A stretch of DNA of 13,289 nucleotides. Source: Fonticula alba ATCC 38817. Lineage: Eukaryota > Protista > Nucleariida. Made by a program: the position numbers and the translations under genes. The DNA lies in NCBI GenBank assembly GCA_000388065.2, contig KB932304.1; one strand, given 5' to 3'. Under the pieces are notes generated by a model. That model was not told the DNA's origin and did no database searches. It worked only from the letters and a program-made list of their open reading frames with translations. Shown one piece after another: positions 1 through 13,289 of this stretch (position 1 is its first letter; the number at the start of each line of letters is the position of its first letter).

Positions 1-424
1 AAACTCTAAGTCTAGTACTATTATCCAACAAAACTATCAACCTATCATAAACCCCTCTCATTTTTGGGAACACATAAGCAATATGAGCTAGACCCACCTC
101 TGAACGAGGAAGCTTTATACTTAATAACCTATCAAATAAGTCTACATCCAACTTCCTAACCATAAAATAAGCAATAAACCCTCCTACAAAAAAAAAGAGT
201 AATAATATCTGCCTAAGAGCCAAAGACTGGTAGTCAAATCCCCTAAACCCATCCATAACAAATGAAATAGCTACTATGGAGAACACAAACAGAATAAACT
301 GCAATAATAAATATAACACACTAAACAAAATCTCAAAATAATTCAAATGAGACAAGCCACTCAATCTTTTATGGATATCCTTATGATTTGTAGAGAACAA
401 CCATTTAGAAACAAATTGATTCAT
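1..424 (-). CDS. Chimeric membrane-protein ORF, 3'-truncated by the window edge (>=141 aa): cox1-like first 17 codons fused to an orf282-family body
   Basis: Manual translation: ATG at 424-422 preceded by an in-frame TAA, no stop down to base 2. MNQFVSKWLFSTNHKDI-HKRLSGLSHLNYFEILFSVLYLLLQFILFVFSIVAISF...GFIAYFMVRKLDVDLFDRLLSIKLPRSEVGL... Absent from the ORF track, probably because no stop falls in the window. Confidence 0.8.
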   Translation of the reverse strand, partial: MNQFVSKWLFSTNHKDIHKRLSGLSHLNYFEILFSVLYLLLQFILFVFSIVAISFVMDGFRGFDYQSLALRQILLLFFFVGGFIAYFMVRKLDVDLFDRLLSIKLPRSEVGLAHIAYVFPKMRGVYDRLIVLLDNSTRLRV

Positions 425-457
425 TTATGATTTGTTTATAGTATATTGGTTGTTTAT

Positions 458-530
458 GGCGGACTATAGGATTCGAACCCATGACCAACAGAATCACAAT
501 CTGGTGCTCTACCAACTGAGCTAAGCCCGC
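458..530 (-). tRNA. trnH: tRNA-His(GTG)
   Basis: GCGGGCT/AGTCCGC acceptor, D arm GCTC-AGTTGGTA-GAGC, loop TT-GTG-AT, T loop TTCGAAT, discriminator C. Confidence 0.95.
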
Positions 531-541
531 ATAATTTTAGT

Positions 542-613
542 TTGAGAAAATGGGATTCGAACCCATGCGTCATGAAATCAAAATCCATTGCCTTACCACT
601 TGGCTATTCCTCA
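542..613 (-). tRNA. trnQ: tRNA-Gln(TTG)
   Basis: TGAGGAA/TTTCTCA acceptor, ATGGA-TT-TTG-AT-TTCAT anticodon arm, ATGGG-TTCGAAT-CCCAT T arm. Confidence 0.95.
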
Positions 614-869
614 ATGGAGTTTCCTCCTTATATTTTGTTAATATTAGTTCTTAAATTTAGTTAATTTTTATTAGAATTAGATAAAACTTCTCTAACTAAT
701 GATACTTTTTCCATATTAACACAATATGAATATATCATGTTATAACTAATTGTAAAAAATACACAAAACATAAAAGAAAGATTAAAAAAAGTTAATAAAT
801 CTACTTGTGGCATAAAATATAATATATAATGGCTATATTATCTGGAAGATTATTAATATATTATCTATT

Positions 870-952
870 TGAGGGCGATGGGATTCGAACCCATGCTCAC
901 ATTCGTGGATAGATTTACAGTCTATTGCTTTAAACCGCTCAGCCACACCCTC
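870..952 (-). tRNA. trnY: tRNA-Tyr(GTA), long variable arm (bacterial type)
   Basis: GAGGGTG/CGCCCTC acceptor, ATAGA-CT-GTA-AA-TCTAT, variable region CCACGAATGTGAGC. Confidence 0.95.
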
Positions 953-954
953 AA

Positions 955-1026
955 TGAGTTTAACAGGACTCGAACCTGCGACCAACGGATTAAAAGTCCG
1001 CTGCTCTACCACTGAGCTATAAACTC
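955..1026 (-). tRNA. trnK: tRNA-Lys(TTT)
   Basis: GAGTTTA/TAAACTC acceptor, GCGGA-CT-TTT-AA-TCCGT, GCAGG-TTCGAGT-CCTGT, discriminator A. Confidence 0.95.
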
Positions 1027-1146
1027 TTATTTATAAAGTTAAATAACCCCCATTCAGTCTAATTTATTTTACTATTCCTTTACGATCTAGTGTCGAACAG
1101 ATTTAAGCTTCTAATATAATAGCATTTATTTAGGCTATAACGTAGG

Positions 1147-1195
1147 AATTTCCTAATCCTGAAGAGATTGTCGTATCTTGCCCTGTTAGGAAATT
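1147..1195. repeat. 10-bp perfect inverted repeat in the spacer between divergent tRNA clusters
   Basis: AATTTCCTAA (1147-1156) / TTAGGAAATT (1186-1195). Confidence 0.7.
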
Positions 1196-1222
1196 ATTAG
1201 TTATGTTGTTATTCAAAAAATA

Positions 1223-1307
1223 GCCCGCTTGGTGGAACTGGCAGACACGACAGACTTAAAATCTGTTTTCAGTTTATGAAGTATTGGTTCGAGTCCAATA
1301 GTGGGTA
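1223..1307 (+). tRNA. trnL: tRNA-Leu(TAA), long variable arm
   Basis: GCCCGCT/AGTGGGT acceptor, ACAGA-CT-TAA-AA-TCTGT, ATTGG-TTCGAGT-CCAAT. Confidence 0.95.
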
Positions 1308-1309
1308 TT

Positions 1310-1381
1310 GGGCTTATAGTTTAGTGGTAAAACGTTCCACTCATGATGGATACTACGTGGGTTCGATTCCTACTAAGCCCA
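1310..1381 (+). tRNA. trnI: tRNA with CAT anticodon, probably lysidine-type tRNA-Ile(CAT) rather than Met
   Basis: GGGCTTA/TAAGCCC acceptor, GTTT/AAAC D stem, loop CT-CAT-GA. The GGGCTTATAGTTTA...CCTACTAAGCC frame resembles mitochondrial trnI(CAU) genes as I recall them. tRNA call is firm; Ile versus Met is inferred. Confidence 0.8.
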
Positions 1382-1408
1382 ATGCTCCCGATCTTTTGAT
1401 CGTAGCAT
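1382..1408 (+). other. Stem-loop immediately 3' of the Leu-Ile tRNA pair
   Basis: ATGCT-CC-CGATC-TTTT-GATCG-T-AGCAT. Confidence 0.6.
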
Positions 1409-1564
1409 ACCACTATGATAGTTTATGGATGTATCTTTCGCACACACACATGCTCAGATATTACCTATCTCTTAATATTGCTTTTAGGCCACACAATATA
1501 ATTTATATTTCATTTTTTTAAATGAGATTTGTTTTTTAAGTATTTATATTATAGTTTGTTTTAA

Positions 1565-1602
1565 TTATAAAATTTTTTTTTATGAAAAATATTTTATTTG
1601 TG
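1565..1602 (+). repeat. 38-bp perfect copy of the leader and first 7 codons of orf731 (inverted relative to 13252-13289)
   Basis: TTATAAAATTTTTTTTTATGAAAAATATTTTATTTGTG is identical to the reverse complement of 13252-13289. Confidence 0.95.
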
Positions 1603-1647
1603 TATGTTCCAGCTAGTGAGACACTAGTGTGGGTTGTTAGTGATTAA
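1582..1647 (+). CDS. 21-aa upstream ORF (MKNILFVYVPASETLVWVVSD), in frame with orf282 and separated from it by one TAA
   Basis: ATG at 1582, TAA at 1645-1647, then open FSCGSKFRFSYFTIRFIF to the ATG at 1702 (120-nt offset). Confidence 0.45.
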   Translation: MKNILFVYVPASETLVWVVSD

Positions 1648-1701
1648 TTCAGTTGTGGATCAAAATTTAGATTTAGTTATTTTACTATTAGATTTATATT
1701 T

Positions 1702-2550
1702 ATGTATAATAGGTTAGATTTAATGGAGTTAAAAGCCTTATATGAAAACATGATAGCCCCGATTTTATCTATTATTTTATTTATAGTTAAATTTTTGATG
1801 TATATAATTGGAATAATTTATATATCTAAAATACAACCAGTTTATATATCTGAAGCTTCTACTGATTATTTTTTGAAGTATTATTATTATGTTATTATTG
1901 TTATTTTTATTGGATTAGGGTATCTAGTTAGTAAGTACTTCTTTAATGATTTGTATAGTAATTTGTCTTTGCCTTCGGCTAGTAAAGGATTTTATTATTT
2001 ATTGGGTCTGTTTTTGGAAGAGTATTTATTGGATAAGTGTTCTTTGTTGCTAGCTTATATTGGTCCTGCTCGAAGTAAATTGTTGGTTTTTAATTTTGTG
2101 AAATTTTTAGTTAAAGTATTGTTTCCTTTGTTTCAAGTAGGTTGTTTTGTTTTATTTCTGGTTGGGGTTATTTCCTCTTGGTATTTAATTGTGTTTGTAG
2201 CAGCTGCCCTGGTTAATTGGCTGTTTTGTTTAGTTATTTTTTCTTATGAAAAGACTTGTACAGTGGCTTTTGAGTATTTAAAAACATTGATTGATGTGGA
2301 GGTTATAGACTCTGTCCCTTTGTTTGATAGTAGGTTTTTAGCTGTTGTAGCTATCACTGTAAAGATCTCTGAAGAGGGTAAAAACGAAGGGTTTGAAGCA
2401 GCTGATGGTGGAAACTTAGGCCAGCGCTGGCTTTTCTATGCTTATTTTTCTGCTTATAAGGGAATGTATGATGCTTATTTAGGTTATACAACGAAAGCTA
2501 TGGCTGTGCTCAGAGTGTCTGTTTGGTTTTTTATAGTGATGGTAATATAA
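1702..2550 (+). CDS. orf282, multi-pass membrane protein of unknown function; intact member of a local paralog family
   Basis: Long ORF with several hydrophobic segments; by eye, no tatC, ccmC or respiratory-chain motifs. Confidence 0.75.
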   Translation: MYNRLDLMELKALYENMIAPILSIILFIVKFLMYIIGIIYISKIQPVYISEASTDYFLKYYYYVIIVIFIGLGYLVSKYFFNDLYSNLSLPSASKGFYYLLGLFLEEYLLDKCSLLLAYIGPARSKLLVFNFVKFLVKVLFPLFQVGCFVLFLVGVISSWYLIVFVAAALVNWLFCLVIFSYEKTCTVAFEYLKTLIDVEVIDSVPLFDSRFLAVVAITVKISEEGKNEGFEAADGGNLGQRWLFYAYFSAYKGMYDAYLGYTTKAMAVLRVSVWFFIVMVI

Positions 2551-2987
2551 TGTTTAGTTTTGTTAAAAATATTAGATTTTATTCTACTATAGCTAGTGGG
2601 AAATTAAGATTAGGGTTTGTCAATGACGCTAGTAAGGCTAGCTTACGTGGTAACTTTAGAAAAGGAGGACTGGACATTTTGCACCCAGTACTTACAAAGT
2701 TTGATGAAGAGGTTGAGACTCATTGTGTTCTATTACAAGGAACTAGTGTAAGTACACCCACAAATCCAGCAGAGTTGATAGATAACGATTTAAATATGGT
2801 TGGTGAGAATAAAGCACAATATGGGGTTGTACCTCATCAAAAGGTCTGTTTTAATAATAACCAGTTTAGTCCTATTAAAGGCTCTGAAAAATTTATTGAA
2901 CAAAATGGGGATAGGGTAATCGATATTGTTAAAAGTAAAAACCCGGGTTTATTGAATGAAAATGATACTGATAGTGATGTAGATTAG
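2550..2987 (+). CDS. orf145, soluble hypothetical protein, probably translationally coupled to orf282
   Basis: TAATG stop/start overlap at 2548-2552 favours the ATG at 2550 over the TTG at 2523. Confidence 0.65.
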   Translation: MFSFVKNIRFYSTIASGKLRLGFVNDASKASLRGNFRKGGLDILHPVLTKFDEEVETHCVLLQGTSVSTPTNPAELIDNDLNMVGENKAQYGVVPHQKVCFNNNQFSPIKGSEKFIEQNGDRVIDIVKSKNPGLLNENDTDSDVD

Positions 2988-3220
2988 TAAAAGGATAAAT
3001 TACATATATAATAATAGTTAAATTATATATTGTATTATAATCTAAATTAATTTAACTGCTATGATTTCACGATGTAGAATTTATTAGTATAAGTTTAAAT
3101 AAAAAATAAAAGAATAATTACACTATATAATATTGATCTAAACTGTAATATGTTCATGATAATAAACATTAATAATTACTGATTCACATACAAAATTAAA
3201 AACAACATAAAATAATATAA

Positions 3221-3635
3221 AGAGTTTATAGCTCAGTTGGTAGAGCAATTGCTTTGCAAGCAATAGGTCATGGGTTCGAGTCCTGTTAAACTCCATAAGA
3301 ATTAAGTATTCTATAGTATAGTTTATAGCTCAGGTGTTTCTAGGGTGTTGAGCTATTTATATGTTTTTTATATAAGAATGTTGTGTATTTTCTGCCTGTA
3401 GTTTATGGTTTTATCCTTGTTGTATAAAAAATATGGTTTATGTAAAATAACCTATTATTTAGGTTATTTGATACTGTACAGAGCACTTCTGTATGTTAAG
3501 CTCTTTAAACTATTAACTATTGGTGTTATAATAGTTTTATATAGCCCCTATTTAATATTCAAGTAGGGGCTTATTCAAAGTATAGTAAAATAAAGAGATT
3601 ATTTTACTAGAATATATCTATATGTTTAATATTAT
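3221..3635 (+). repeat. Diverged duplicated module, copy 1 (copy 2 at 6731-7130)
   Basis: Collinear blocks: tRNA(-like) gene plus CATAAGAA; 3392-3425 vs 6888-6921 (28/34 identical); AGCCC(C)TA hairpins; 3607-3635 vs 7102-7130 (24/29 identical). Confidence 0.8.
3222..3294 (+). tRNA. trnA: tRNA-Ala(TGC) by anticodon, with an atypical Lys-identical acceptor stem
   Basis: GAGTTTA/TAAACTC acceptor, GCTC-AGTTGGTA-GAGC, ATTGC-TT-TGC-AA-GCAAT, ATGGG-TTCGAGT-CCTGT, discriminator C. Confidence 0.8.
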
Positions 3636-3833
3636 CTTGTATATTAATTAATAATTTATTAGTAGTTAATATCATATTAAATAGCTATTATTTCCTGCTG
3701 ATTGTAAAGTATTATAATCCTTTTAGATTTAGAATTTATTAGCGTTATATTTTGTATAATTTATGTGGGTTTTTATTTCGGTATGTTTTTGTGGTGTAAT
3801 GTAAGATTTTATATTATATATATACATGTATAA
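3598..3833 (+). pseudogene. Decayed partial duplicate of nad6
   Basis: 3723-3773 matches nad6 4029-4079 at 48/51 nt (LDLEFISVIFCIIYVGF vs LDLDFIGVIFCIIYVGF); stops and frameshifts upstream, TAA at 3831-3833. Confidence 0.8.
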
Positions 3834-3866
3834 TATTTAATATTAGACTAAAGCTGATGATTATAA

Positions 3867-4427
3867 ATGTATATGGTGCTATTTTCTTTAGAGTTTTTAG
3901 TATTTTTTATTTTATTTGTAGTTTTATTGTGTGCTCTTCGTTTTTATTATAATTTTTTGTTTGAAGAGTTGACATTGATAAATTCTATTCTTTGTATTTA
4001 TTTTATTGCTTTATTGATATTATTGAAATTAGATTTAGATTTTATTGGTGTTATATTTTGTATAATTTATGTGGGTTTTATTTTGGTTTTAATTATTCAC
4101 ATGATTAGGTTTTTTTCAGGTTTTGGTTCGGTAGAAAATGTTATTTCATTTTCTAATGTGTTGTTTTTATTGTCTCCATTTTTGTTATATGTATGTTTTA
4201 AATTTTTTGGGGGTTTGTCTCCGATGTTTGAATCTAATGGTGTGTTAGAGCTGGATCTTTTAAATGGTTACGAATCTATTAATGTTGGTTTATCTAAGCC
4301 TATTTTATCTCAAGTTAGTGATTATATGTTTTTTTTTGATGGGTTGATTACATTGGGGTGTATATTAACTTTATTGACAGCTACTATAGGTGTTATTATT
4401 ATTAATAAATACGGAAATAAAAAGTAG
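3867..4427 (+). CDS. nad6: NADH dehydrogenase subunit 6
   Basis: Hydrophobic 186 aa with DFIGVIFCIIYVGFILVL (Nad6 YVGAI-type motif) and C-terminal LLTATIGVIII (LLxAMIGAIVL-type motif). Confidence 0.88.
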   Translation: MYMVLFSLEFLVFFILFVVLLCALRFYYNFLFEELTLINSILCIYFIALLILLKLDLDFIGVIFCIIYVGFILVLIIHMIRFFSGFGSVENVISFSNVLFLLSPFLLYVCFKFFGGLSPMFESNGVLELDLLNGYESINVGLSKPILSQVSDYMFFFDGLITLGCILTLLTATIGVIIINKYGNKK

Positions 4428-4914
4428 TTTGCCTTCTAGATTGGGGCGCTCTTTATTTTGGTTAAAAAATTATTATAGTAAGGATTATGGCTCTATGCTA
4501 AATAAATCTATATCTATAGATAATTACTTAGAAAATAGAAAAAGTAGAAAGAGGCAAAGGGGGGGTAGGTTATGTGCAAGTTATTCACATAACCTGTTAT
4601 ATGGTCACTTTAGACTAGTGCCTGTATCTAAAAAAGATAATAAGGATATTAAGTCATATTACTTACTTGCAAATTTCTGTAAAAGGTATTTAATAGTAAA
4701 AAAAAAAAAAATTAGAAGAAGGGTATTTAAAGCATATAGAAATAATATAAGGTATTGTTTTAGTTATAAGGGTGCTCTAGACTTAAACAGAGTTGATTTT
4801 TTTAAAAATACAGTTGATTTAAGTTATTTTAATAAATTAAATAAACTTGATTCAGATAATACTGTAGCAATTAGGCAAGCTATAGAGTCTATTGCTTTAC
4901 AAAAAAGTAAATAA
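4411..4914 (+). CDS. rps3: Ribosomal protein S3, N-terminal part (rps3_a); start codon uncertain, ACG at 4411 fits the alignment
   Basis: (T/M)EIKSSLPSRLGRSLFWLKNYYSKDYGSMLNKSISIDNYL resembles the uS3 N-terminus MGQKVxPxxFRLG....W.S.W....Y...L..D..IR.YL; basic; directly upstream of the S3 C-terminal ORF. Confidence 0.6.
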   Translation, partial: TEIKSSLPSRLGRSLFWLKNYYSKDYGSMLNKSISIDNYLENRKSRKRQRGGRLCASYSHNLLYGHFRLVPVSKKDNKDIKSYYLLANFCKRYLIVKKKKIRRRVFKAYRNNIRYCFSYKGALDLNRVDFFKNTVDLSYFNKLNKLDSDNTVAIRQAIESIALQKSK

Positions 4915-4915
4915 T

Positions 4916-6289
4916 ATGTTAATTGACTGTACTTACTCAGGTGAATTAATAGAAACTAAGGATAAAGTTCTATCTGGTCTGAATAAAGATAATAAAAGAA
5001 CAGAACAAACAGTATTATATGAATCTCATAATAAAGATTCTGCTTATAAAGTAATAACTTCTAATAACATCACTTTCATTATGAAAGAATTAAAGTATTT
5101 TAATAGTATTAATACTATTAAATATAGTTTTAATGAGTCAATTTATTTTAATTTATATCATAAATTAAAATTTATTAAAATTCCTAATAAATTTTATTTA
5201 AAACAATGGTTTCACATAATGAAGCTAAATCATGTAAATTTAAAATATTTTAAATTAAGAAATTTAATTGAGTCTAAGTATACTAAATTAAAGTCTATTA
5301 ATGGTACAATTCCTGAAATTGATATAAAAATGTTAAATACTAATTATATTGAAAGAATATCAGAAAGATACTTTAATAAACTAGATATTTTTTCTAAAAA
5401 TTTTATAAGTGAGTTGTATCCTTTATTTAATTCATTTAGATTAAATGAATTTAAAATAATAAATAAGCCAGATGGACTTTATAGAAAACACAATGAGTTT
5501 AAACCACTAGACCATGGTGTTTTAAGAACAGTTATGTTAGGATTTAACTTCCTAAGTGATAAAAAGATAGAATTAAGATCTAACTCAGATTTATTATTGA
5601 GTGATGCAAGGTCTATAGAACCAAAATTTTTAAATTTCAAGCAAAAATATTTTTCTGAAAGCAGTGATCATTCAATATATAATTCTAATGCCACTGCAAA
5701 TATAAATAATATATCAGTATTTAAAAATACTGATAAAATAAATAATATATTTAATAGTATATCCTTATATAAATTTATAGATATTCAAATGAAATTAAAA
5801 TTAGTAGCTAACAATAATTTAAATAAATTAATAAAAACAAATACAAAAACAAAAAAACAAAAATATAATAAATGGAACAACAAAAGCTACTTAAAAGTAA
5901 TATCATCATACTCTAACATAGAGCATGACACAGGATTTATTACAAGAATATACTCACAATTTACTAATTATTCATTACCATATTGGAATGCACACATCTT
6001 TATACAGATGCTAAGACTAATATTCATGTCAAACAGATTCCTACTATTAAAATTATTATCAAGAGCACTATTCACATTCAGATTCCACCCAAATAAAAGC
6101 AAAGATGCACCAAAAGCTTTAAAAATAGAAGCCTCTGGATTAATAAAAAAATTAGGAAGATCAAACAAAATACAATACAAACTAAAAGACACAAACAAAA
6201 ACAACATCAAATACGCCGTAGATTACGAAAACCTAACTGCATTAAGCAGATACGGAATCACAAACATAAAAGTAAGCCTAGAAAACTAA
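4916..6289 (+). CDS. rps3: Ribosomal protein S3, C-terminal part with a long low-complexity N-terminal region (rps3_b)
   Basis: C-terminal KALKIEASGLIKKLGRS...VDYENLTALSRYGITNIKVSL fits the uS3 C-domain (KGIKI.CSGRL...R...IDY....A.T.YG..GIKVW); ATG 1 nt after the rps3_a stop. Confidence 0.8.
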   Translation: MLIDCTYSGELIETKDKVLSGLNKDNKRTEQTVLYESHNKDSAYKVITSNNITFIMKELKYFNSINTIKYSFNESIYFNLYHKLKFIKIPNKFYLKQWFHIMKLNHVNLKYFKLRNLIESKYTKLKSINGTIPEIDIKMLNTNYIERISERYFNKLDIFSKNFISELYPLFNSFRLNEFKIINKPDGLYRKHNEFKPLDHGVLRTVMLGFNFLSDKKIELRSNSDLLLSDARSIEPKFLNFKQKYFSESSDHSIYNSNATANINNISVFKNTDKINNIFNSISLYKFIDIQMKLKLVANNNLNKLIKTNTKTKKQKYNKWNNKSYLKVISSYSNIEHDTGFITRIYSQFTNYSLPYWNAHIFIQMLRLIFMSNRFLLLKLLSRALFTFRFHPNKSKDAPKALKIEASGLIKKLGRSNKIQYKLKDTNKNNIKYAVDYENLTALSRYGITNIKVSLEN

Positions 6290-6298
6290 AAAAAAAAA

Positions 6299-6730
6299 AT
6301 GATAGTATCAAGACTAAACTATACTTCTTTTTCTTTAGTTAATACACCTAGCATAGAACACAGTGTATTCTTATACTCTGCTATTCTAGCTATGACTCTT
6401 TCTCTAGTAATATATACTGCTGGATACTGTGTAACAAATAACCACAGAACAGACCTAAACAAAATAAGTGCTTATGAGTGTGGATACAGTCCAAACTCTC
6501 ACGAATCAAACCAATACAATGCAAACTTCATAATAATATGTCTATTATTCCTACTAATAGACCTAGAAATACTATTCCTAGTACCATTCCTATACACTGT
6601 TGACTCCATAGACACTACCACATGGAATATCTTCATATACTGTATGTGCACTATCATAGGAGGAATAATATTCGAACTACTAACAAGCTCGTTCGGAAAA
6701 CTAGGTAAAATCATCAAACAAAACAAATAA
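6299..6730 (+). CDS. nad3: NADH dehydrogenase subunit 3
   Basis: KISAYECGY and FLLIDLEILFLVP motifs. Confidence 0.93.
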   Translation: MIVSRLNYTSFSLVNTPSIEHSVFLYSAILAMTLSLVIYTAGYCVTNNHRTDLNKISAYECGYSPNSHESNQYNANFIIICLLFLLIDLEILFLVPFLYTVDSIDTTTWNIFIYCMCTIIGGIIFELLTSSFGKLGKIIKQNK

Positions 6731-7130
6731 AGAGTTTATAGCTCAACGGCTAGAGCAAGTATATACACCTGATATGGGTTCGAATCCCATTAAACTCCAT
6801 AAGAAATAAATATTATAAACACATTGGGGATTTACAGTATGTAAAGTAATTTATCTGTACTATTTATATAACAAGATAGTACATACTCTACCTGAATTTT
6901 ATGGCTAAATCCTTGTTGTATTTTAAATTTAGTTTTTGTGATAAAAACATAAATTAATTTAATTATATAGTAGACACAACAGTCGTGTATATTATGGGAT
7001 TTTTAATATAAACTATTAAAATACCCATAGATCTATATAGCCCTATACAACAATATTATATAGGGCTAACTCTAACAATACATAAATAATGTAGTGTTTA
7101 TCTAGAATATATTCATGTGTTAAATCTTAT
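6731..7130 (+). repeat. Diverged duplicated module, copy 2, with three hairpins
   Basis: Blocks shared with copy 1; stems TGTACTAT/ATAGTACA (6856-6883), TATGGG..TTTTAATA/TATTAAAA..CCCATA (6993-7029), TAGCCCTATA/TATAGGGCTA (7038-7068). Confidence 0.8.
6732..6798 (+). ncRNA. tRNA-like element lacking a proper anticodon arm (pseudo-tRNA or t-element)
   Basis: Perfect acceptor GAGTTTA/TAAACTC, D stem GCTC/GAGC and T arm ATGGG-TTCGAAT-CCCAT, but only 17 nt between D and T arms (22-23 expected); starts 1 nt after the nad3 stop. Confidence 0.75.
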
Positions 7131-7806
7131 ATAAATATATAATAAATATATTATACCTAATCTAACCTGAAGAGGAATAAATAATATTATAAAATAAAAT
7201 AAAAATAATTTTTATTTTATAAATGTGTATTTTATAATACTAATACATTAATAAAACAATATAGAACCAGACATGTAAGTGTCAACCCCATATAATAAAA
7301 ATAATAAGTTCTTAGGTTAGATTTAGTATGCTATAGACTAACTATCAAAACTACATAAATATTTATATTCATTAGGTAGATAAAAAACTTATTGATCTAG
7401 TACATAATACTTATACTAAATATAAATATAATATTATATTTATATTTAAATACACTTATTCAGGGTACATCCTAACTATGATTAGATAAGGTATAAGTTT
7501 CTAAACGATGGTCTGTCAGTACCTTCCCTTTATTAAATTCTAAATAAAATAGATATAACTAAAAAAAGTATATAATATACAATACATTATAAATAATTCT
7601 ATTAAATTAATAAATGTATTGGGGACTGCTAAATAACCCAAATTATTAAAACATATAATATCTAACTCTAAAATATAAAGCCTTAAAATATGAATAAGCA
7701 CCCCAATACATCCTATAGCTAAAATATTATACTATAATATTAATAGCATATATTCTAAGTCTTATTTTGCGGGATAATTAATAAACAGAAATTATTTTGG
7801 ACTGAA

Positions 7807-7832
7807 AAAAAAACTAGGGGCCTAGTTTTTTT
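7807..7832. terminator. Symmetric hairpin with A/T tails, terminator- or processing-like
   Basis: AAAAAAACTAG-GGGC-CTAGTTTTTTT, 11-bp perfect stem, 50 nt past the stop of the 7882-8064 ORF; function inferred. Confidence 0.5.
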
Positions 7833-7881
7833 AATATAAACTAATTTTAAACAGGTTCCTATTAAAACATATTGGTAATAA

Positions 7882-8064
7882 CTAATAATAGGTGCTGGTT
7901 CTAATATGTTTTAATAATTTTAGGTTTATTAAATAAAAACAATATTGTTTAAATATTGTTTGTACCTTATATTTTAAAGATATATATATTATACCAATAA
8001 TGTAGGCTGAATTAGCATATTTAAATAGAATTATAAACCCCCTACTTTTAAAATGTCCTATCAA
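7882..8064 (-). CDS. 60-aa ORF, truncated paralog of the orf282 N-terminus (mini-gene or pseudogene)
   Basis: IILF-x6-YIIGIIYIS matches orf282 in residues and spacing; TTG start. Confidence 0.55.
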   Translation of the reverse strand: MIGHFKSRGFIILFKYANSAYIIGIIYISLKYKVQTIFKQYCFYLINLKLLKHIRTSTYY

Positions 8065-8163
8065 GCTTCTCTAAATACACAGCTATTATTTCTATCTAGA
8101 GAGTTATATTCTAGATTATAACCCACTAGTTTTAGCCAGTACAGCCTTGGACAAATACATCAA

Positions 8164-8520
8164 CCCTTCTTCACTATAAGCCTATACTATAGGAGCATTG
8201 TGTTAGAGGAAATACACTTAATAAATTGAGTTCACTAACATATTGGTGACTGCAAGCCATGATTTTATATAAGAAAGTCTTCACATATAATTCATTCATA
8301 AGTAAAGAGCTCTAACTCTAGTAGGTTCTAACTATTAGATAGTAAGAACTAACACAGTTAGCCTCACACCTACTACCAAACACTATTTTGATTAAGAACT
8401 TAATCACTAATTTAAAATTAACATTAGAATTACATAATAAACCTAAAGACATTATAATACAGATAAATTAATCAAAATTACAATAATATAAACTAGTCTA
8501 AACCTACGCACTAAAAATAA
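8164..8520 (-). pseudogene. Decayed orf282-family copy B
   Basis: One frame with multiple stops gives LFLVRRFRLVYIIVILINLS, VYYVILMLIL, IKSWLAVTNMLVN and SEEG, collinear with orf282 LFIVKFLMYIIGIIYIS, YYYVIIVIFI, ISSW..LVN and SEEG. Confidence 0.45.
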
Positions 8521-8599
8521 AATTATAAATGTTTTTATATTAATAGTGTAAAACTAAGATTATACCCATTAGCTATTGTAATGCTATATCTTCCTAGTA

Positions 8600-9105
8600 G
8601 ACCTGTGCTATATCTAAAACAATATAAATATAACCCAAACAATATCTACTAGGAAAATACTACTATATAAATAACTGCAAGTAGTGTATACACACCTATC
8701 AACTCAATTATAATTTAGCCAGAGTCTTAACAGAGCTTAGTTCACGATTATTTCCTAAAATAATATCCAATAAATACATTTTCTAAGAAATAGCTTAACT
8801 AAAATAAAACAATGATACAGAGCTAGAATTAACCCTTGTAATTCATAAGTCTATAACCATAGATTTATGAATCTAACGAGATACACACTGGAAAATCATA
8901 AGGGTATTATGACTCATATAATATTAGCACTAAAAATGATATAAATACTACAAAAACTATAGCTCTCAACCCCACCCATAACACCATTACTTTAACAAGA
9001 AAAATAAACTGCTATAAAATTAAGACAGAACAAAATACTGTATATAGCCACATATAGATGTCCTGTACTATTCAATTCGTATAATATCTTTTTAATTAAA
9101 ACCAT
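8600..9105 (-). pseudogene. Decayed orf282-family copy A
   Basis: ATG at 9105 gives MVLIKKILYE...SILFCLNFIAVY, with TAA after 37 codons. The 14-mer GTATTTATTGGATA (8764-8777) is identical to orf282 2022-2035. LF-LE-YLLD is recoverable with two 1-nt indels, followed by LGNNR..VKTLAKL vs IGPAR..VKFLVKV. Confidence 0.6.
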
Positions 9106-9143
9106 AATACTAACTAAAGTAACTACACAACAAAGAATTAGTT

Positions 9144-9200
9144 TACAGGCAAGGGGATTCGAACCCATTCACAGGTAAACCTGCTCTTTCCTAGACCTGA
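9144..9200 (-). ncRNA. Minimal tRNA-like element (T arm plus partial acceptor, no anticodon loop)
   Basis: TCAGGTC...GAGCAGG-TTTA-CCTG-TGA-ATGGG-TTCGAAT-CCCCT-TGCCTGT-A; acceptor pairs at 5 of 7 positions, D arm reduced. Confidence 0.6.
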
Positions 9201-9285
9201 AAAAAAAAAAATTATTAAATGTTTTTTATTTAATAAATAAAAAATCTATCAGGGATTTTTTTTATGGTATCGTCTTTGTTTATAT

Positions 9286-10236
9286 TTAATATTTGTTATT
9301 GTTTTGGTTGATAATGTTGTTTGTCCATGTAGTGTAGTTGTATTGGTGTGTTGTTTTGTTTGTTATGTTGTGTTGTAGTATGCTTCCTATTGTTGGGTTT
9401 GTTTGCCTGTTGTGGTTGTTAATGTTTGGGTTTGTTGTGTGGTTTGCTTGTAATGGAGTTAATGTTTCTCTGAGTTCATTTGGTGTGTTGTTTTGTGTTG
9501 TTTCTTGAGTGATTCCTATAGTTTTTAAATAGCTTATCCAATTTTGGTGGATGTTGTTTTGTGTTGCTTCTATTGCTAATTTTGTTAGTTCTTTGTTTGG
9601 AGTTTTTGGGTGGGCTTTTGCGTAGTTTTCTTTAACTGTTTTTGCAAATTCTTTATATTCACTCTCTGACATTAAGTTTAATGCTCGGGCAGTGCTGTTG
9701 TAGAATTGAGTGTAAGAGTGGGAGTTTGATAGGGCTGTGCAATGTAATGATTGTGAGTTGTGAAAGAATTCTACTGCTTTGTCTTCTGAATAAGTTTCGG
9801 CGTATTCTTTGAATTCTTCAGAATAAGTTGTGTCTAGTTTATTGTCTAATTTATCTAGCCATTCTATAATTTCACTGGCTTTTAATAGTCCTGCTGTTTT
9901 ATATGAATTCATATGAGAGTTCATATAAATATAGTGTATTCCTTTATAAGTATCGAATCTAGTAGGAGATCCCTCAGATACTAATGTTTTATTTAAGATA
10001 TAGGCTTTTTTTAAGTCTTCTGCTTGAGAGTTAAATAATAGTTGGAATAAAGATCCTTTACTCATTATGAATGAGTCGATTAATGGTCTTATTAAATAAG
10101 GCTTAGAAATCTTTGTAGGGATTGTTTCAGGGAGTTTTTCTGTGATTATTACACTTGATATTTCACCCCAGTATCCCATATCAAAAAGGATTAGGTTAAC
10201 AGTAGAAAGAAGCATATTATACAAATTAGATAGCAT
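9286..10236 (-). CDS. orf316, hypothetical soluble protein with an HMG-box-like segment and an N/T/Q-rich tail
   Basis: Long ORF overlapping the rps7 end by 11 nt; motif at aa 194-233. Confidence 0.7.
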   Translation of the reverse strand: MLSNLYNMLLSTVNLILFDMGYWGEISSVIITEKLPETIPTKISKPYLIRPLIDSFIMSKGSLFQLLFNSQAEDLKKAYILNKTLVSEGSPTRFDTYKGIHYIYMNSHMNSYKTAGLLKASEIIEWLDKLDNKLDTTYSEEFKEYAETYSEDKAVEFFHNSQSLHCTALSNSHSYTQFYNSTARALNLMSESEYKEFAKTVKENYAKAHPKTPNKELTKLAIEATQNNIHQNWISYLKTIGITQETTQNNTPNELRETLTPLQANHTTNPNINNHNRQTNPTIGSILQHNITNKTTHQYNYTTWTNNIINQNNNKY

Positions 10237-11026
10237 TTTTTTTTTTTTTCACGTCATCATTTTTTGTAAAGCATTTTTTAGTGTTAGTTGCTTTTTCTAA
10301 CATTTTAGTAGGGTGTATTCCTTCTGGTATAATTTTAACCTTAATGTTTTTTTTGATGTTGGCAATTCTATTTAATTTTTTTATGTTTAATTCTTTTGTG
10401 TTTGGTGTAGTTTTAGCTAGTTTAGGGCTTATGTTCTCTTCTTTATGGTTTTTGATAAAGAAGTTTACTAGTCTTACTCTTAGTCTTTTCATTTGTAATA
10501 TTCTATTTTTTAGAGCTACTGTTCTTTTTCTAGATTTTGTAGTATAGAATTCCATGCGATTTTTTCTAGAATATATTGTTAAATGTTTAGTTTGTACATT
10601 CCTAAAATGATTTAATGATACAAGTAGTTTTTTAGGGAGTCCATCTACTCCGTTTAAGTTTTTAATGTGTTGTAATATTAAGTTTTTATAGACTGAAAGT
10701 TTTCTTGAGCCCAACATTAAAAAATGTTTTTTAGATTGTCTTCCCATTCTAATGTTTATGTATTTACTTATTGGTAATGATTCAGATGTTAGGTACATAT
10801 AGTATTCATATGGGCTAACACCATCATTCTCTCTTGATAATATATATACTTGATTTAAAGCATTATGCATTTTTTGACTTTTACCATTTTTTATAAAACC
10901 TTTTCTTATTTTTTCTGTTACAAAATTATCTTGGTAATCTAAGTGTTTATAACCTGCTCCTAAGTTTATTTTTTTAGGGGAGTGACTATAAGATTTATGA
11001 TTATAATTATATATTATATTATTCAT
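10226..11026 (-). CDS. rps7: Ribosomal protein S7, divergent, with a basic C-terminal extension
   Basis: GFIKNGKSQKMHNALNQVY and SPYEYYMYLTSESLPISKYINIRMGR align with uS7 (MK.GKK..A..I...AF; P......AI.N..P..EV...R.GG). Confidence 0.7.
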   Translation of the reverse strand: MNNIIYNYNHKSYSHSPKKINLGAGYKHLDYQDNFVTEKIRKGFIKNGKSQKMHNALNQVYILSRENDGVSPYEYYMYLTSESLPISKYINIRMGRQSKKHFLMLGSRKLSVYKNLILQHIKNLNGVDGLPKKLLVSLNHFRNVQTKHLTIYSRKNRMEFYTTKSRKRTVALKNRILQMKRLRVRLVNFFIKNHKEENISPKLAKTTPNTKELNIKKLNRIANIKKNIKVKIIPEGIHPTKMLEKATNTKKCFTKNDDVKKKKNAI

Positions 11027-11076
11027 ATAATATGAAATATAATTAATTTACAAACTATATCTGGGTACTTAATAAA

Positions 11077-13272
11077 TCAATATTTAAAACATGTTGAGAC
11101 TATTTCCTCATCTATTTCTTTAAGAAGTAGACAGAGCTTATATATCTCAATGGCTTTTTTTATCTCTACTATACTGGGAGTATAGTCCATTAACACCTGC
11201 CTAGTTTTTAAACATTTTTTTAAATAATCTATTAATAAAATAATATTTTCATTCTCTATCTCTTGATAAATATTATTAAATAGCATAATGTTTAACTTTC
11301 CTTCAGCTAATAACTTAATTAATTCTGACGTAAAACAACTATCAGGCTTTGTTAATTTAAACCATCTTAAATGTTCTAATGATTTGTTGTGTGTTTTATA
11401 TTTAATTCTATGTATCTTTTTTTCTAGATTAGATGAATCTAAGTTACTATTTACTAAAAAAGTCCTTAACTCATCTTTAGTAAAGTCTAATTCAGGAAAT
11501 AACAAGTTTAAAGTGTCTTTAATAAATTCTGTATTATTATACTTATATAATTCTGTTTTTACTCTCCTTGTATAAAGAGAGTTTAAGTCTTTAGATAAAA
11601 CTACATTATTATATGTATTACAATTAATATAATTTTTCATTATATTAAATAAGAAATCCCTTCCTCTAAAAGAACCCTGCTCATAAAAAGGCTCCCCCCT
11701 TTTAGATAAAGGTTTTATCGCCCCCTTTTTAAAAAAGAATTTTGTCCTATTAGTATATTTTGTTAATCCTATTCTTTTGTTTTGTCTCAATATTCTTTTC
11801 TTTACTCTATGGGCTATAACCCTTTTATAATGATAAGTAAATAAACAATTGGCATATTTATGGACCATTCCAAAGATAGATTTTCTTAACCTAGGTTTAT
11901 TTTTAGTTAAGAAAAATTTATTACATCTTTTTCTAAGCCTCAATAGACGATATGGTTTATATCTTAATATCCTAACGTTTTTAATCTTTAATTTAATTCT
12001 TCTTTCTATTTTTAAGTTAGCTAAATCTTGTTTATCTTGGATCTTTTGTCTAGCTGCATACTTAAAAGAAAATTTCCTTTCAACTTTTTGAAATAAAAAT
12101 CCTCTAAAATGGCCTATCCTAGCCATAGTTGAAAATGTGTTAGGATCCATTATATTAAAAGTATTAAAAAACCTGGATGTTAATCTAACATCCACTGCAT
12201 TTCTTGCTAGACTATAAATAAGGCGCTTGTCCTCTAAAAAATATGGCCATTTAATATTTTTATTATTAATTTTATTATAATCTTTTAACTCTGAGAAAGA
12301 GTTAAAATAATATAATTTAGATTTACCCTCTTTTTTAATATATATAGGATCAGGAAAAATATCTGGGTTATTTAATAAAAAATTATTAAATGATTTAGAA
12401 CTTTTAGTTTTTAAATTATACTTATAACGACCTACAACATATTTAAATATAGCTAATCGTGACCTCCTCCACTTAAATTTATACTTAGATCTAATAGTTA
12501 ACTTATCTTGTTTATACTTTAAAATATAAAAAGTGTTAAAAGAGCCATGAATTAAACGCTCTAATCTATAAAATAAAACTTTATCTTTTAAATTAGCCCT
12601 ATTACTAATAATTTTAAAATATTTATTAATAGCCAACCTTATAAAATGAAATAAGCCCCTATTCAACTCAGTAAACGTATTCAACCCACCAAATTTATAA
12701 TTCTTTGAATACACTTCACTAAACTCAGATTTCTTATAAGAATTATACCCAGAAATCTTTAAAAATAACTCCCTCTCATACCTCTTATACTTAATAAAAG
12801 CATGAGAAGAACCCTTACGCTCATAAAAATACCTATAATTATAAAAAAAAAAAGGATCTCTAACACCAACATACTTCAACCTCCCATATTTTTTTAAATC
12901 ATATAACATCAAAAACCTCCTCTTATTAAAAAAATTACGCCTCCTTAAAAAAAAAGGAAGCCTCCTAAATTGACCCAAAACATCTTTAGATTCACACTTC
13001 AAATTCACCAACCTACCCCTCTTATTAAAAACCCTATAAAACTTAATAGAATTAGGCAAAGAAACATGAACCCTCCTAAACTCCAACTGAGACAAATCAT
13101 CAATAACACCAGAAACCGATAAAACCGGCAAACCAACCCCACCAGCTGCCAACAAATCCAATACAGCCCCCTTCAAAAACAACAACTCCAAATCATTAAA
13201 ATCCAACAAATAAACAGACCTAATACCGTCCAAATTCAAATACTCTCCTCTCACAAATAAAATATTTTTCAT
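11077..13272 (-). CDS. orf731, very Lys/Arg/Phe-rich protein, possibly a highly diverged or fused ribosomal protein
   Basis: 731 open codons in AT-rich DNA, same strand as and directly upstream of rps7; no unambiguous family motif. Confidence 0.75.
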   Translation of the reverse strand: MKNILFVRGEYLNLDGIRSVYLLDFNDLELLFLKGAVLDLLAAGGVGLPVLSVSGVIDDLSQLEFRRVHVSLPNSIKFYRVFNKRGRLVNLKCESKDVLGQFRRLPFFLRRRNFFNKRRFLMLYDLKKYGRLKYVGVRDPFFFYNYRYFYERKGSSHAFIKYKRYERELFLKISGYNSYKKSEFSEVYSKNYKFGGLNTFTELNRGLFHFIRLAINKYFKIISNRANLKDKVLFYRLERLIHGSFNTFYILKYKQDKLTIRSKYKFKWRRSRLAIFKYVVGRYKYNLKTKSSKSFNNFLLNNPDIFPDPIYIKKEGKSKLYYFNSFSELKDYNKINNKNIKWPYFLEDKRLIYSLARNAVDVRLTSRFFNTFNIMDPNTFSTMARIGHFRGFLFQKVERKFSFKYAARQKIQDKQDLANLKIERRIKLKIKNVRILRYKPYRLLRLRKRCNKFFLTKNKPRLRKSIFGMVHKYANCLFTYHYKRVIAHRVKKRILRQNKRIGLTKYTNRTKFFFKKGAIKPLSKRGEPFYEQGSFRGRDFLFNIMKNYINCNTYNNVVLSKDLNSLYTRRVKTELYKYNNTEFIKDTLNLLFPELDFTKDELRTFLVNSNLDSSNLEKKIHRIKYKTHNKSLEHLRWFKLTKPDSCFTSELIKLLAEGKLNIMLFNNIYQEIENENIILLIDYLKKCLKTRQVLMDYTPSIVEIKKAIEIYKLCLLLKEIDEEIVSTCFKY

Positions 13273-13289
13273 AAAAAAAAATTTTATAA
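13252..13289 (-). repeat. Source copy of the 38-bp leader/start repeat; runs to the window edge and may be longer
   Basis: Reverse complement is identical to 1565-1602. Confidence 0.95.

Follow-up and report, generated by a model that had tools for sequence, protein, structure and literature searches.

Toxin-antitoxin systems of type II, such as MazEF, Kis-Kid and CcdAB, are pairs of small genes in which the first stop codon overlaps the second start codon. The gene of the toxin fold stands second, behind that of a small DNA-binding antitoxin, and many divergent and decayed copies are found in one genome. In type III systems (ToxN, CptN, AbiQ) the antitoxin is made of tandem RNA repeats upstream of the toxin gene. 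The closest parallels in mitochondrial DNA (mtDNA) are of other kinds. The cytoplasmic male sterility (CMS) open reading frames (ORFs) of plant mitochondria encode hydrophobic proteins and combine, at a repeat, fragments of essential mitochondrial genes with other sequence, and the lineage-specific ORF families of fungal and protist mtDNA (plasmid-derived dpo and rpo genes, homing endonucleases) are multi-copy, patchy, decaying and accessory. To our knowledge, mitochondrial genomes have not been described as carrying toxin-antitoxin-like modules, and our literature searches returned no account of MazF-like genes or toxin-antitoxin modules in such genomes, nor of the ORF family reported here. 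That family is represented by orf282 in a 13,289-nt stretch (the window) of Fonticula alba ATCC 38817, assembly GCA_000388065.2, contig KB932304.1. Here, we show that orf282 is the first gene of a coupled two-gene cassette present in many intact and decayed copies. Tentatively, and with somewhat less than even confidence, we read this cassette as a toxin-antitoxin-like selfish module whose spread and remodelling we ascribe to recombination at a repeat of 1.5 kb.

The window corresponds to C211:31901-45189, the end of a 45-kb AT-rich contig in an assembly of 31 Mb; coordinates given without a contig name are those of the window. We regard contigs C211-C214 as mitochondrial because they carry cox1-3, cob, nad genes, atp6/8, rRNAs and tRNAs; the standard genetic code is used. 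Pfam searches of all ORFs in the window found nad3, a faint rps3 and no other match. Fonticula alba is among the species abbreviations of the gene-content figure in a 2024 review. A preliminary description of the window had proposed up to five copies of an orf282-like membrane ORF within 9 kb, belonging to an expanding and decaying accessory family that might be selfish and toxin- or CMS-like.

A coupled two-gene cassette in many copies

The gene orf282 (1702-2550, plus strand; hereafter A1) is intact, encodes 282 aa with approximately five hydrophobic helices, and belongs to a real multi-copy mitochondrial family, family A. By phmmer and hidden Markov model (HMM) searches it matches five other loci (phmmer E 1e-5 to 1e-80), of which A2 (C211:14062-14937), A3 (C212:4731-5597) and A4 (C211:19223-20047) are intact, A5 (C211:16393-17031) is truncated and A6 (C212:7201-7563) is decayed. 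Our first family-A profile, built from these six members, scores each of them at E 1e-35 to 1e-124 and everything else at noise. A profile search of the whole genome returns the same six places and none on the nuclear contigs.

Directly 3' of every intact A gene lies a second conserved ORF, which defines family B (B1, B2, B3 and B4). B1 (2550-2987, plus strand), recognized by phmmer and HMM, is a soluble partner gene of 145 aa, whose ATG overlaps the TAA of orf282 (TAATG). The junction is ATGA in A3/B3, an 11-nt overlap in A2/B2 and a 4-nt gap in A4/B4. A further member, B5 (C211:28692-29222), is preceded by 430 nt that encode the C-terminal half of another family-A gene (E 1e-10). Profile searches of the whole genome place family B on mitochondrial contigs only. 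The unit is a coupled two-gene cassette, A then B, and not a lone membrane ORF; two small genes with a stop/start overlap are also the layout of the type II systems. Just downstream of B5 we also observe a B-like remnant on the minus strand (C211:28382-28642; 13.5 bits, E 0.0025).

Decay is widespread among the copies. A6 is nearly full-length and has four stops and one frameshift, with a decayed B gene (B6) downstream. In total, we detect eight A loci and a relic, five intact B genes and two B remnants, all on C211 and C212, and the family-A paralogues are 24-44% identical in pairwise comparison. The coexistence of intact A1-A4, the truncated A5, the stop-ridden A6/B6, an A half and relics is that of a multigene family under birth-and-death evolution. 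The expanding and decaying accessory family of the preliminary description is supported, with most of its intact, truncated, stop-ridden and relic copies outside the window. As in MazEF, Kis-Kid and CcdAB, many divergent and decayed copies occur in one genome. The plasmid dpo/rpo and homing-endonuclease families are likewise multi-copy, patchy and decaying, but the Fonticula cassette has no polymerase, endonuclease or reverse-transcriptase domains and pairs a membrane gene with a soluble one.

Protein A has approximately 285 aa; hydropathy shows about five hydrophobic helices, and a conserved soluble segment contains a hairpin. The AlphaFold2 (AF2) model of A1 is of moderate confidence only, with a predicted local distance difference test (pLDDT) score of 61 overall and 70-82 in the C-terminal half. 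Protein A has no Pfam match, a word-indexed search with the family-A alignment gave no relatives, and ESM Atlas feature searches with A1 and with B1 gave nothing usable.

Relatives were found through family B. An exhaustive search of 1.84 billion proteins with the B profile returned 15 proteins at E up to 1e-3. Four are Fonticula's own B proteins, judged by their lengths and, for a fragment, by sequence, and ten are real relatives of 126-165 aa, save one of 471 aa that carries a C-terminal B domain; one relative sits in assembly GCA_004565545.1. The remaining protein, P0007 (3048 aa, eight matching stretches), was rejected as an unrelated repeat protein with weak summed matches. In all six genomic contexts that we fetched, the B relative lies directly 3' of a membrane ORF of 240-285 aa or is fused to one, and the Fonticula A profile recognizes four of these outside membrane proteins (E 6e-14, 3e-12, 3e-38 and 9e-39). 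The six outside contigs are environmental and AT-rich (25-33% G+C), and on one of them we find the 5' portion of an organelle-like small subunit (SSU) rRNA. Judging from these matches, the A-B pair is conserved beyond Fonticula, and the existence of the 471-aa A-B fusion suggests that A and B act together. A complex prediction for A1 with B1 scored 0.00, which is no answer and counts neither for nor against binding. As a separate observation, the AT-rich foreign contig L024 holds two B-like ORFs (773-1153 and 1479-1904), and multiple copies are hence not unique to Fonticula.

Predicted fold of protein B

The AF2 model of B1, built from only five sequences, has a pLDDT of 83 (core >90) and a predicted template-modelling (TM) score of 0.77. 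It consists of a small beta-barrel core with a closing C-terminal helix and resembles toxins of the MazF/PemK-CcdB-ToxN superfamily over the whole domain, with moderate Z scores. In a Foldseek search of PDB with B1, MazF, CcdB, CptN and ToxN rank first (E 0.02-0.2). A search independent of Foldseek, covering 48,161 chains, has among its top rows, over B1 residues 17-133, CptN (Z 6.9), MazF (6.3 and 5.8), CcdB (5.7), Kid (5.4), ToxN (5.3) and AbiQ (5.2). A second structure comparison gives Bacillus cereus MazF at Z 7.0, with a root-mean-square deviation of 3.2 Å and 104 of 116 residues aligned, among 93 chains at Z of at least 5. In the ESM Atlas, B1 matches PemK/MazF and ToxN clusters at TM 0.46-0.57, the ToxN cluster at 0.52. 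With moderate strength, B is hence predicted to adopt the MazF/CcdB/ToxN toxin fold.

Compared with the type II systems, the B model covers approximately 90% of MazF chains (Z 6-7), and the gene of the putative toxin fold likewise stands second. Among 15 B sequences there is no variation at T65 and Q90, and H45 is nearly invariant, being Arg in one relative. Their spacings of 20 and 25 residues compare with 23 and 25 for R29, T52 and Q77 of the MazF alignment, in the same order; R29 and T52 are the residues that we take to be catalytic in MazF. The differences are equally clear. Where the type II systems have a small DNA-binding antitoxin, Fonticula has a 285-aa five-helix membrane protein upstream, and its module is mitochondrial, lacks detectable sequence homology to these systems, has an outside relative in which A and B are naturally fused and has His where MazF has Arg. 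Compared with type III, CptN is among the best fold matches of B1 (Z 6.9, 113-114 residues aligned), but the sequence upstream of B is a conserved protein-coding gene and not a set of tandem RNA repeats. As a candidate antidote, A is coupled to B, and this pairing is kept in the outside contexts and in one fusion; A resembles no known antitoxin.

The 1.5-kb repeat and the copies in the window

The 1.5-kb repeat (375-1911) is present three times, being 99% identical to C211:12735-14271 and 97% identical to C212:5283-6823. It comprises the cox1 5' end, tRNAs, atp8, further tRNAs, the leader of an A gene and 70 codons from the start of that gene. Over these 70 codons A1, A2 and A3 are approximately 99% identical (A2/A3 over 98), against 24-26% afterwards; paralogues of long standing have thus recently acquired a common 5' module. 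At its opposite end, the repeat joins the cox1 start to A-type bodies, in the left-edge ORF described below and in A6. The repeat supplies ready-made starts to genes on both flanks.

Pieces of the same leader recur elsewhere. Positions 1632-1726 equal C213:1-95, where the orf282 leader and first eight codons also head an unrelated basic ORF of 377 aa, and a 38-nt leader piece (1565-1602) has an inverted copy at 13252-13289 that overlaps the start of orf731. From such sequence matches, the same start module seems to be reused by different genes.

The ORF at the left edge of the window (2-424, minus strand; A7), open at that edge and with 141 codons inside the window, had been proposed to align in register with orf282. 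It scores -3.4 bits with the six-member profile. We also used a frameshift-tolerant protein-to-DNA aligner, with a null drawn from both strands of approximately 230-460 unrelated mtDNA windows, real membrane-protein genes included; this gave p 0.04-0.4, and 0.002-0.05 with query and target swapped. An extended family-A profile of ten members, which adds the outside relatives and an extended A6 (X at stops), was run against approximately 1300 six-frame ORFs of the mtDNA. Here, the left-edge ORF is the best non-member, at 11.5 bits and E 0.008, with profile positions 16-125 aligned to ORF residues 28-137. The controls reached at most 7.3 bits for the reversed database and 10.3 bits for ten shuffled databases, and none of 2000 composition-preserving shuffles of the ORF reached 11.5 bits; it thereby withstood the composition shuffling that the preliminary description had named as a way to refute its alignment. 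Two helices are predicted at the positions of the first two transmembrane helices (TM1/TM2).

The head of this ORF is a chimera. By blastx, its start codon and codons 2-17 (375-424, minus strand) are identical to the true cox1 5' end, and the cox1 leader with the 17 codons is identical to C211:12735-12840 at 106 of 106 nt, 5' leader included. Joined to this is a piece of 32 nt (340-371, minus strand), of which 30 are identical to the cob 5' end, codons ~4-14 (KRLSGLSHL). At the corresponding end of the repeat on C212, cox1 codons 8-17 and LSGLS (with all-synonymous differences) are followed by the decayed A6, whose N-terminal part matches family-A profile positions 33-123. The left-edge ORF and A6 hence share one chimeric ancestor, and A6 is unambiguously family A. 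The extended profile, the shuffled controls and this common head all indicate that the left-edge ORF is a diverged family-A member in register with orf282, as first described.

With cox1 and cob fragments, a position at the edge of a recombination repeat and a hydrophobic product, the left-edge ORF is built as CMS-type chimeras are. In contrast to plant CMS ORFs, its body comes from a conserved family with a coupled partner gene and not from random intergenic sequence, and it is known from sequence alone, whereas the plant ORFs have a phenotype or restorer.

Three further copies had been proposed on the minus strand. The one at 7882-8064 is weakly supported, in the form of a relic at 7797-8031 that consists of two collinear pieces in different frames. 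The first piece (7972-8031, minus strand; 20 codons) corresponds to family-A profile positions 25-44 (IILF......YIIGIIYIS). Its YIIGIIYIS reproduces residues 34-42 of A1-A3, the DNA differing at four nucleotides, all synonymously, and IILF lies upstream at the same spacing as in orf282. In six frames, YIIGIIYIS is the only run of eight or more residues common to family A and the rest of the mtDNA, and the same comparison yields about five chance runs of seven; the alignment score of this piece alone is not significant. The second piece (7797-7883, minus strand; 29 codons, profile 59-87) lies approximately 90 nt downstream, scores 10.4 bits (E 0.018) and ranks next after the left-edge ORF; one of the eleven null databases reaches 10.3 bits, and the second piece hence rests mainly on its position. 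By a rough estimate, the top noise match would lie no more than ~300 nt away, with the strand and order expected, a few times in a thousand. Given the identical motif and the collinear match, 7797-8031 is quite probably a decayed N-terminal relic of family A.

The two remaining copies, at 8164-8520 and 8600-9105 (together 8164-9105, minus strand), are not supported as family A. Their alignment scores of 29-46 lie at the null mean of 32-39, their profile matches have E 9-30 and are not collinear, and blastx gives no matches. Hence, three of the up to five copies proposed within 9 kb are supported and two are attributable to chance. The sole clear DNA homology in this area is a tRNA-remnant module of ~180 nt near 9100-9240. 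This tRNA-like-remnant module (9100-9240; C212:~3900-4053) is well conserved downstream of unrelated minus-strand genes. A 61% DNA match between 8383-9275 and C212:3214-4053 was rejected as nothing other than this module and AT-rich noise, as were blastn matches (+1/-1) of 8392-8648 to the orf282 5' region, which are at the same level as those to unrelated genes.

The mtDNA is also repetitive on a larger scale. Positions 6284-13289 are 100% identical to C212:10975-17980 (7 kb, the end of C212) and C211:1-702 equals C212:1-702, identities indicating that the mitochondrial assembly is a tangle of large repeats or alternative junctions. In the window, 3197-3659 and 6706-7154 form a degenerate direct duplication of approximately 470 nt (66.7% identity), in which both copies have a tRNA or tRNA-like gene at their start, namely tRNA-Ala (3222-3294) and a tRNA called by Rfam only (6732-6798). 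Elsewhere, the mtDNA holds TatC (C212:1706-2416, minus strand; PF00902, E 3e-9), a CcmC-like ORF (C211:6285-6878, minus strand; PF01578, E 2.8e-5, below cut-off) and an ORF of 587 aa (C211:4512-6272, minus strand) with a W-x-W-D-P-x-E motif and no Pfam match. Genes of the cytochrome c maturation system I would be unusual in an opisthokont.

Competing explanations and their meaning

In the reading that we tentatively favour, gene A encodes an inner-membrane-type protein of approximately 285 aa, in which about five helices are accompanied by a conserved hairpin loop that is soluble, and A and B would work as one unit. Protein B would act as a toxin-type protein that cuts RNA or blocks growth in some other way, while A, co-translated with it, would hold or neutralize B. 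DNA molecules that bear the cassette would then be hard to lose (addiction), which could explain both multiplication and turnover. The cassette has multiplied in the Fonticula mtDNA, with copies diverging to ~25% identity, losing their ends, gaining stops and fading to relics. Recombination at the 1.5-kb repeat repeatedly hands A genes a new 5' end, the left-edge ORF and the decayed copy on C212 beginning instead with cox1 codons and a cob-like piece. We favour selfishness over an ordinary complex because of the paralogues at ~25% identity, the pseudogenes and the toxin fold.

Several observations weigh against such a module. The link between B and toxins is one of predicted fold, with Z no higher than 7, and values below 8 can reflect a common arrangement. 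At the sequence level, Pfam searches with five B members at E up to 10 and a PDB profile search gave no match and no relevant match, respectively. PF02452 was not found in the genome, comparison of B with an alignment of 18 MazF sequences by hhalign gave a probability of 0.07%, and B shows no sequence match to PF02452, PF01845, PF13958 or the solved members of this toxin superfamily. The A1 model has no fold match in PDB and ESM Atlas searches, and an antitoxin with five membrane helices is of no type known to us. Only one of the outside contigs has an rRNA gene. The ratio of nonsynonymous to synonymous substitution rates (dN/dS, omega) is ~0.33 and ~0.43 for the two least diverged pairs, but dS is saturated for most pairs and selection is hence poorly measured. 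Lastly, the fusion and the presence of the pair in several organisms are just as expected of an ordinary conserved complex. The preliminary suggestion of a selfish, accessory element therefore stands as far as the decay of the family goes, but the outside relatives, the fusion included, show that the family is not private to one genome, and selfishness is not proven.

An ordinary but fast-evolving function is accordingly a serious alternative, to which we give roughly a third of our confidence: A and B would form a conserved membrane-tethered complex, for example an RNA-processing nuclease anchored to the inner membrane or an assembly factor, and the extra copies would be neutral by-products of segmental duplication driven by repeats, free of selfish behaviour. 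Such a complex would account for a pair order and key residues that are kept in six outside contigs, once as a fusion, for copies in an mtDNA where large repeats and alternative junctions abound and duplicate much else, and for the missing sequence link of B to toxins. It accounts less well for the number of copies, given that housekeeping genes rarely have five or more paralogues at ~25% identity, with pseudogenes, in one mtDNA, and that one outside contig also has two B paralogues; moreover, A matches no known mitochondrial family or solved structure and B resembles only the toxin fold. We consider it improbable that the membrane ORF acts alone, as a CMS-like or pore-forming product with up to five copies in the window and an irrelevant downstream ORF. 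A is indeed a multi-helix membrane protein, and the left-edge ORF, with cox1 and cob pieces on a hydrophobic ORF, is built like plant CMS genes; however, two of the five claimed copies fail every test, B accompanies A in every case and is the better conserved of the two, and the stop-start overlap and the fusion tie A to B. The toxin- or CMS-like character first suggested finds support in the MazF/CcdB-like predicted fold of B and in the left-edge chimera, but the suggestion had missed the partner gene. Chance, with AT-rich hydrophobic codon bias producing ORFs that are not genes, is very improbable as a general explanation. Against single family members, the left-edge ORF and the 7.8-9.1-kb stretch do score within or near the membrane-gene null, and for 8164-9105 chance holds. 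For the core family it is refuted, with E values down to 1e-80 within Fonticula and 1e-38 for outside relatives; the left-edge ORF beats all shuffles with the extended profile, and chance would not keep frames of 282 and 145 codons open at ~30% G+C, where we estimate that stops make up ~8% of random codons.

The strongest form of the toxin-antitoxin-like reading, that the mtDNAs of Fonticula and some other protists carry true addiction cassettes made of a MazF-fold nuclease and a membrane antidote, is in our view unlikely, if worth stating for its consequences. If it is true, cassettes would compete within the organelle, stabilize the inheritance of certain mtDNA molecules or bias it, and be remodelled by capture of the starts of essential genes. 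An organelle of a fungal relative would then harbour a selfish system of bacterial style for which no relatives are detectable among bacterial sequences. Should B be a working MazF-type protein held by its membrane partner, the pair would offer a molecular basis for selfish mtDNA competition and a non-plant parallel to CMS genes. Even as an ordinary complex, A and B would be a conserved pair of mitochondrial genes that is new and comes with a confident structural model. Under either reading, the locus is a clear case of repeats handing ready-made gene starts to neighbouring ORFs.

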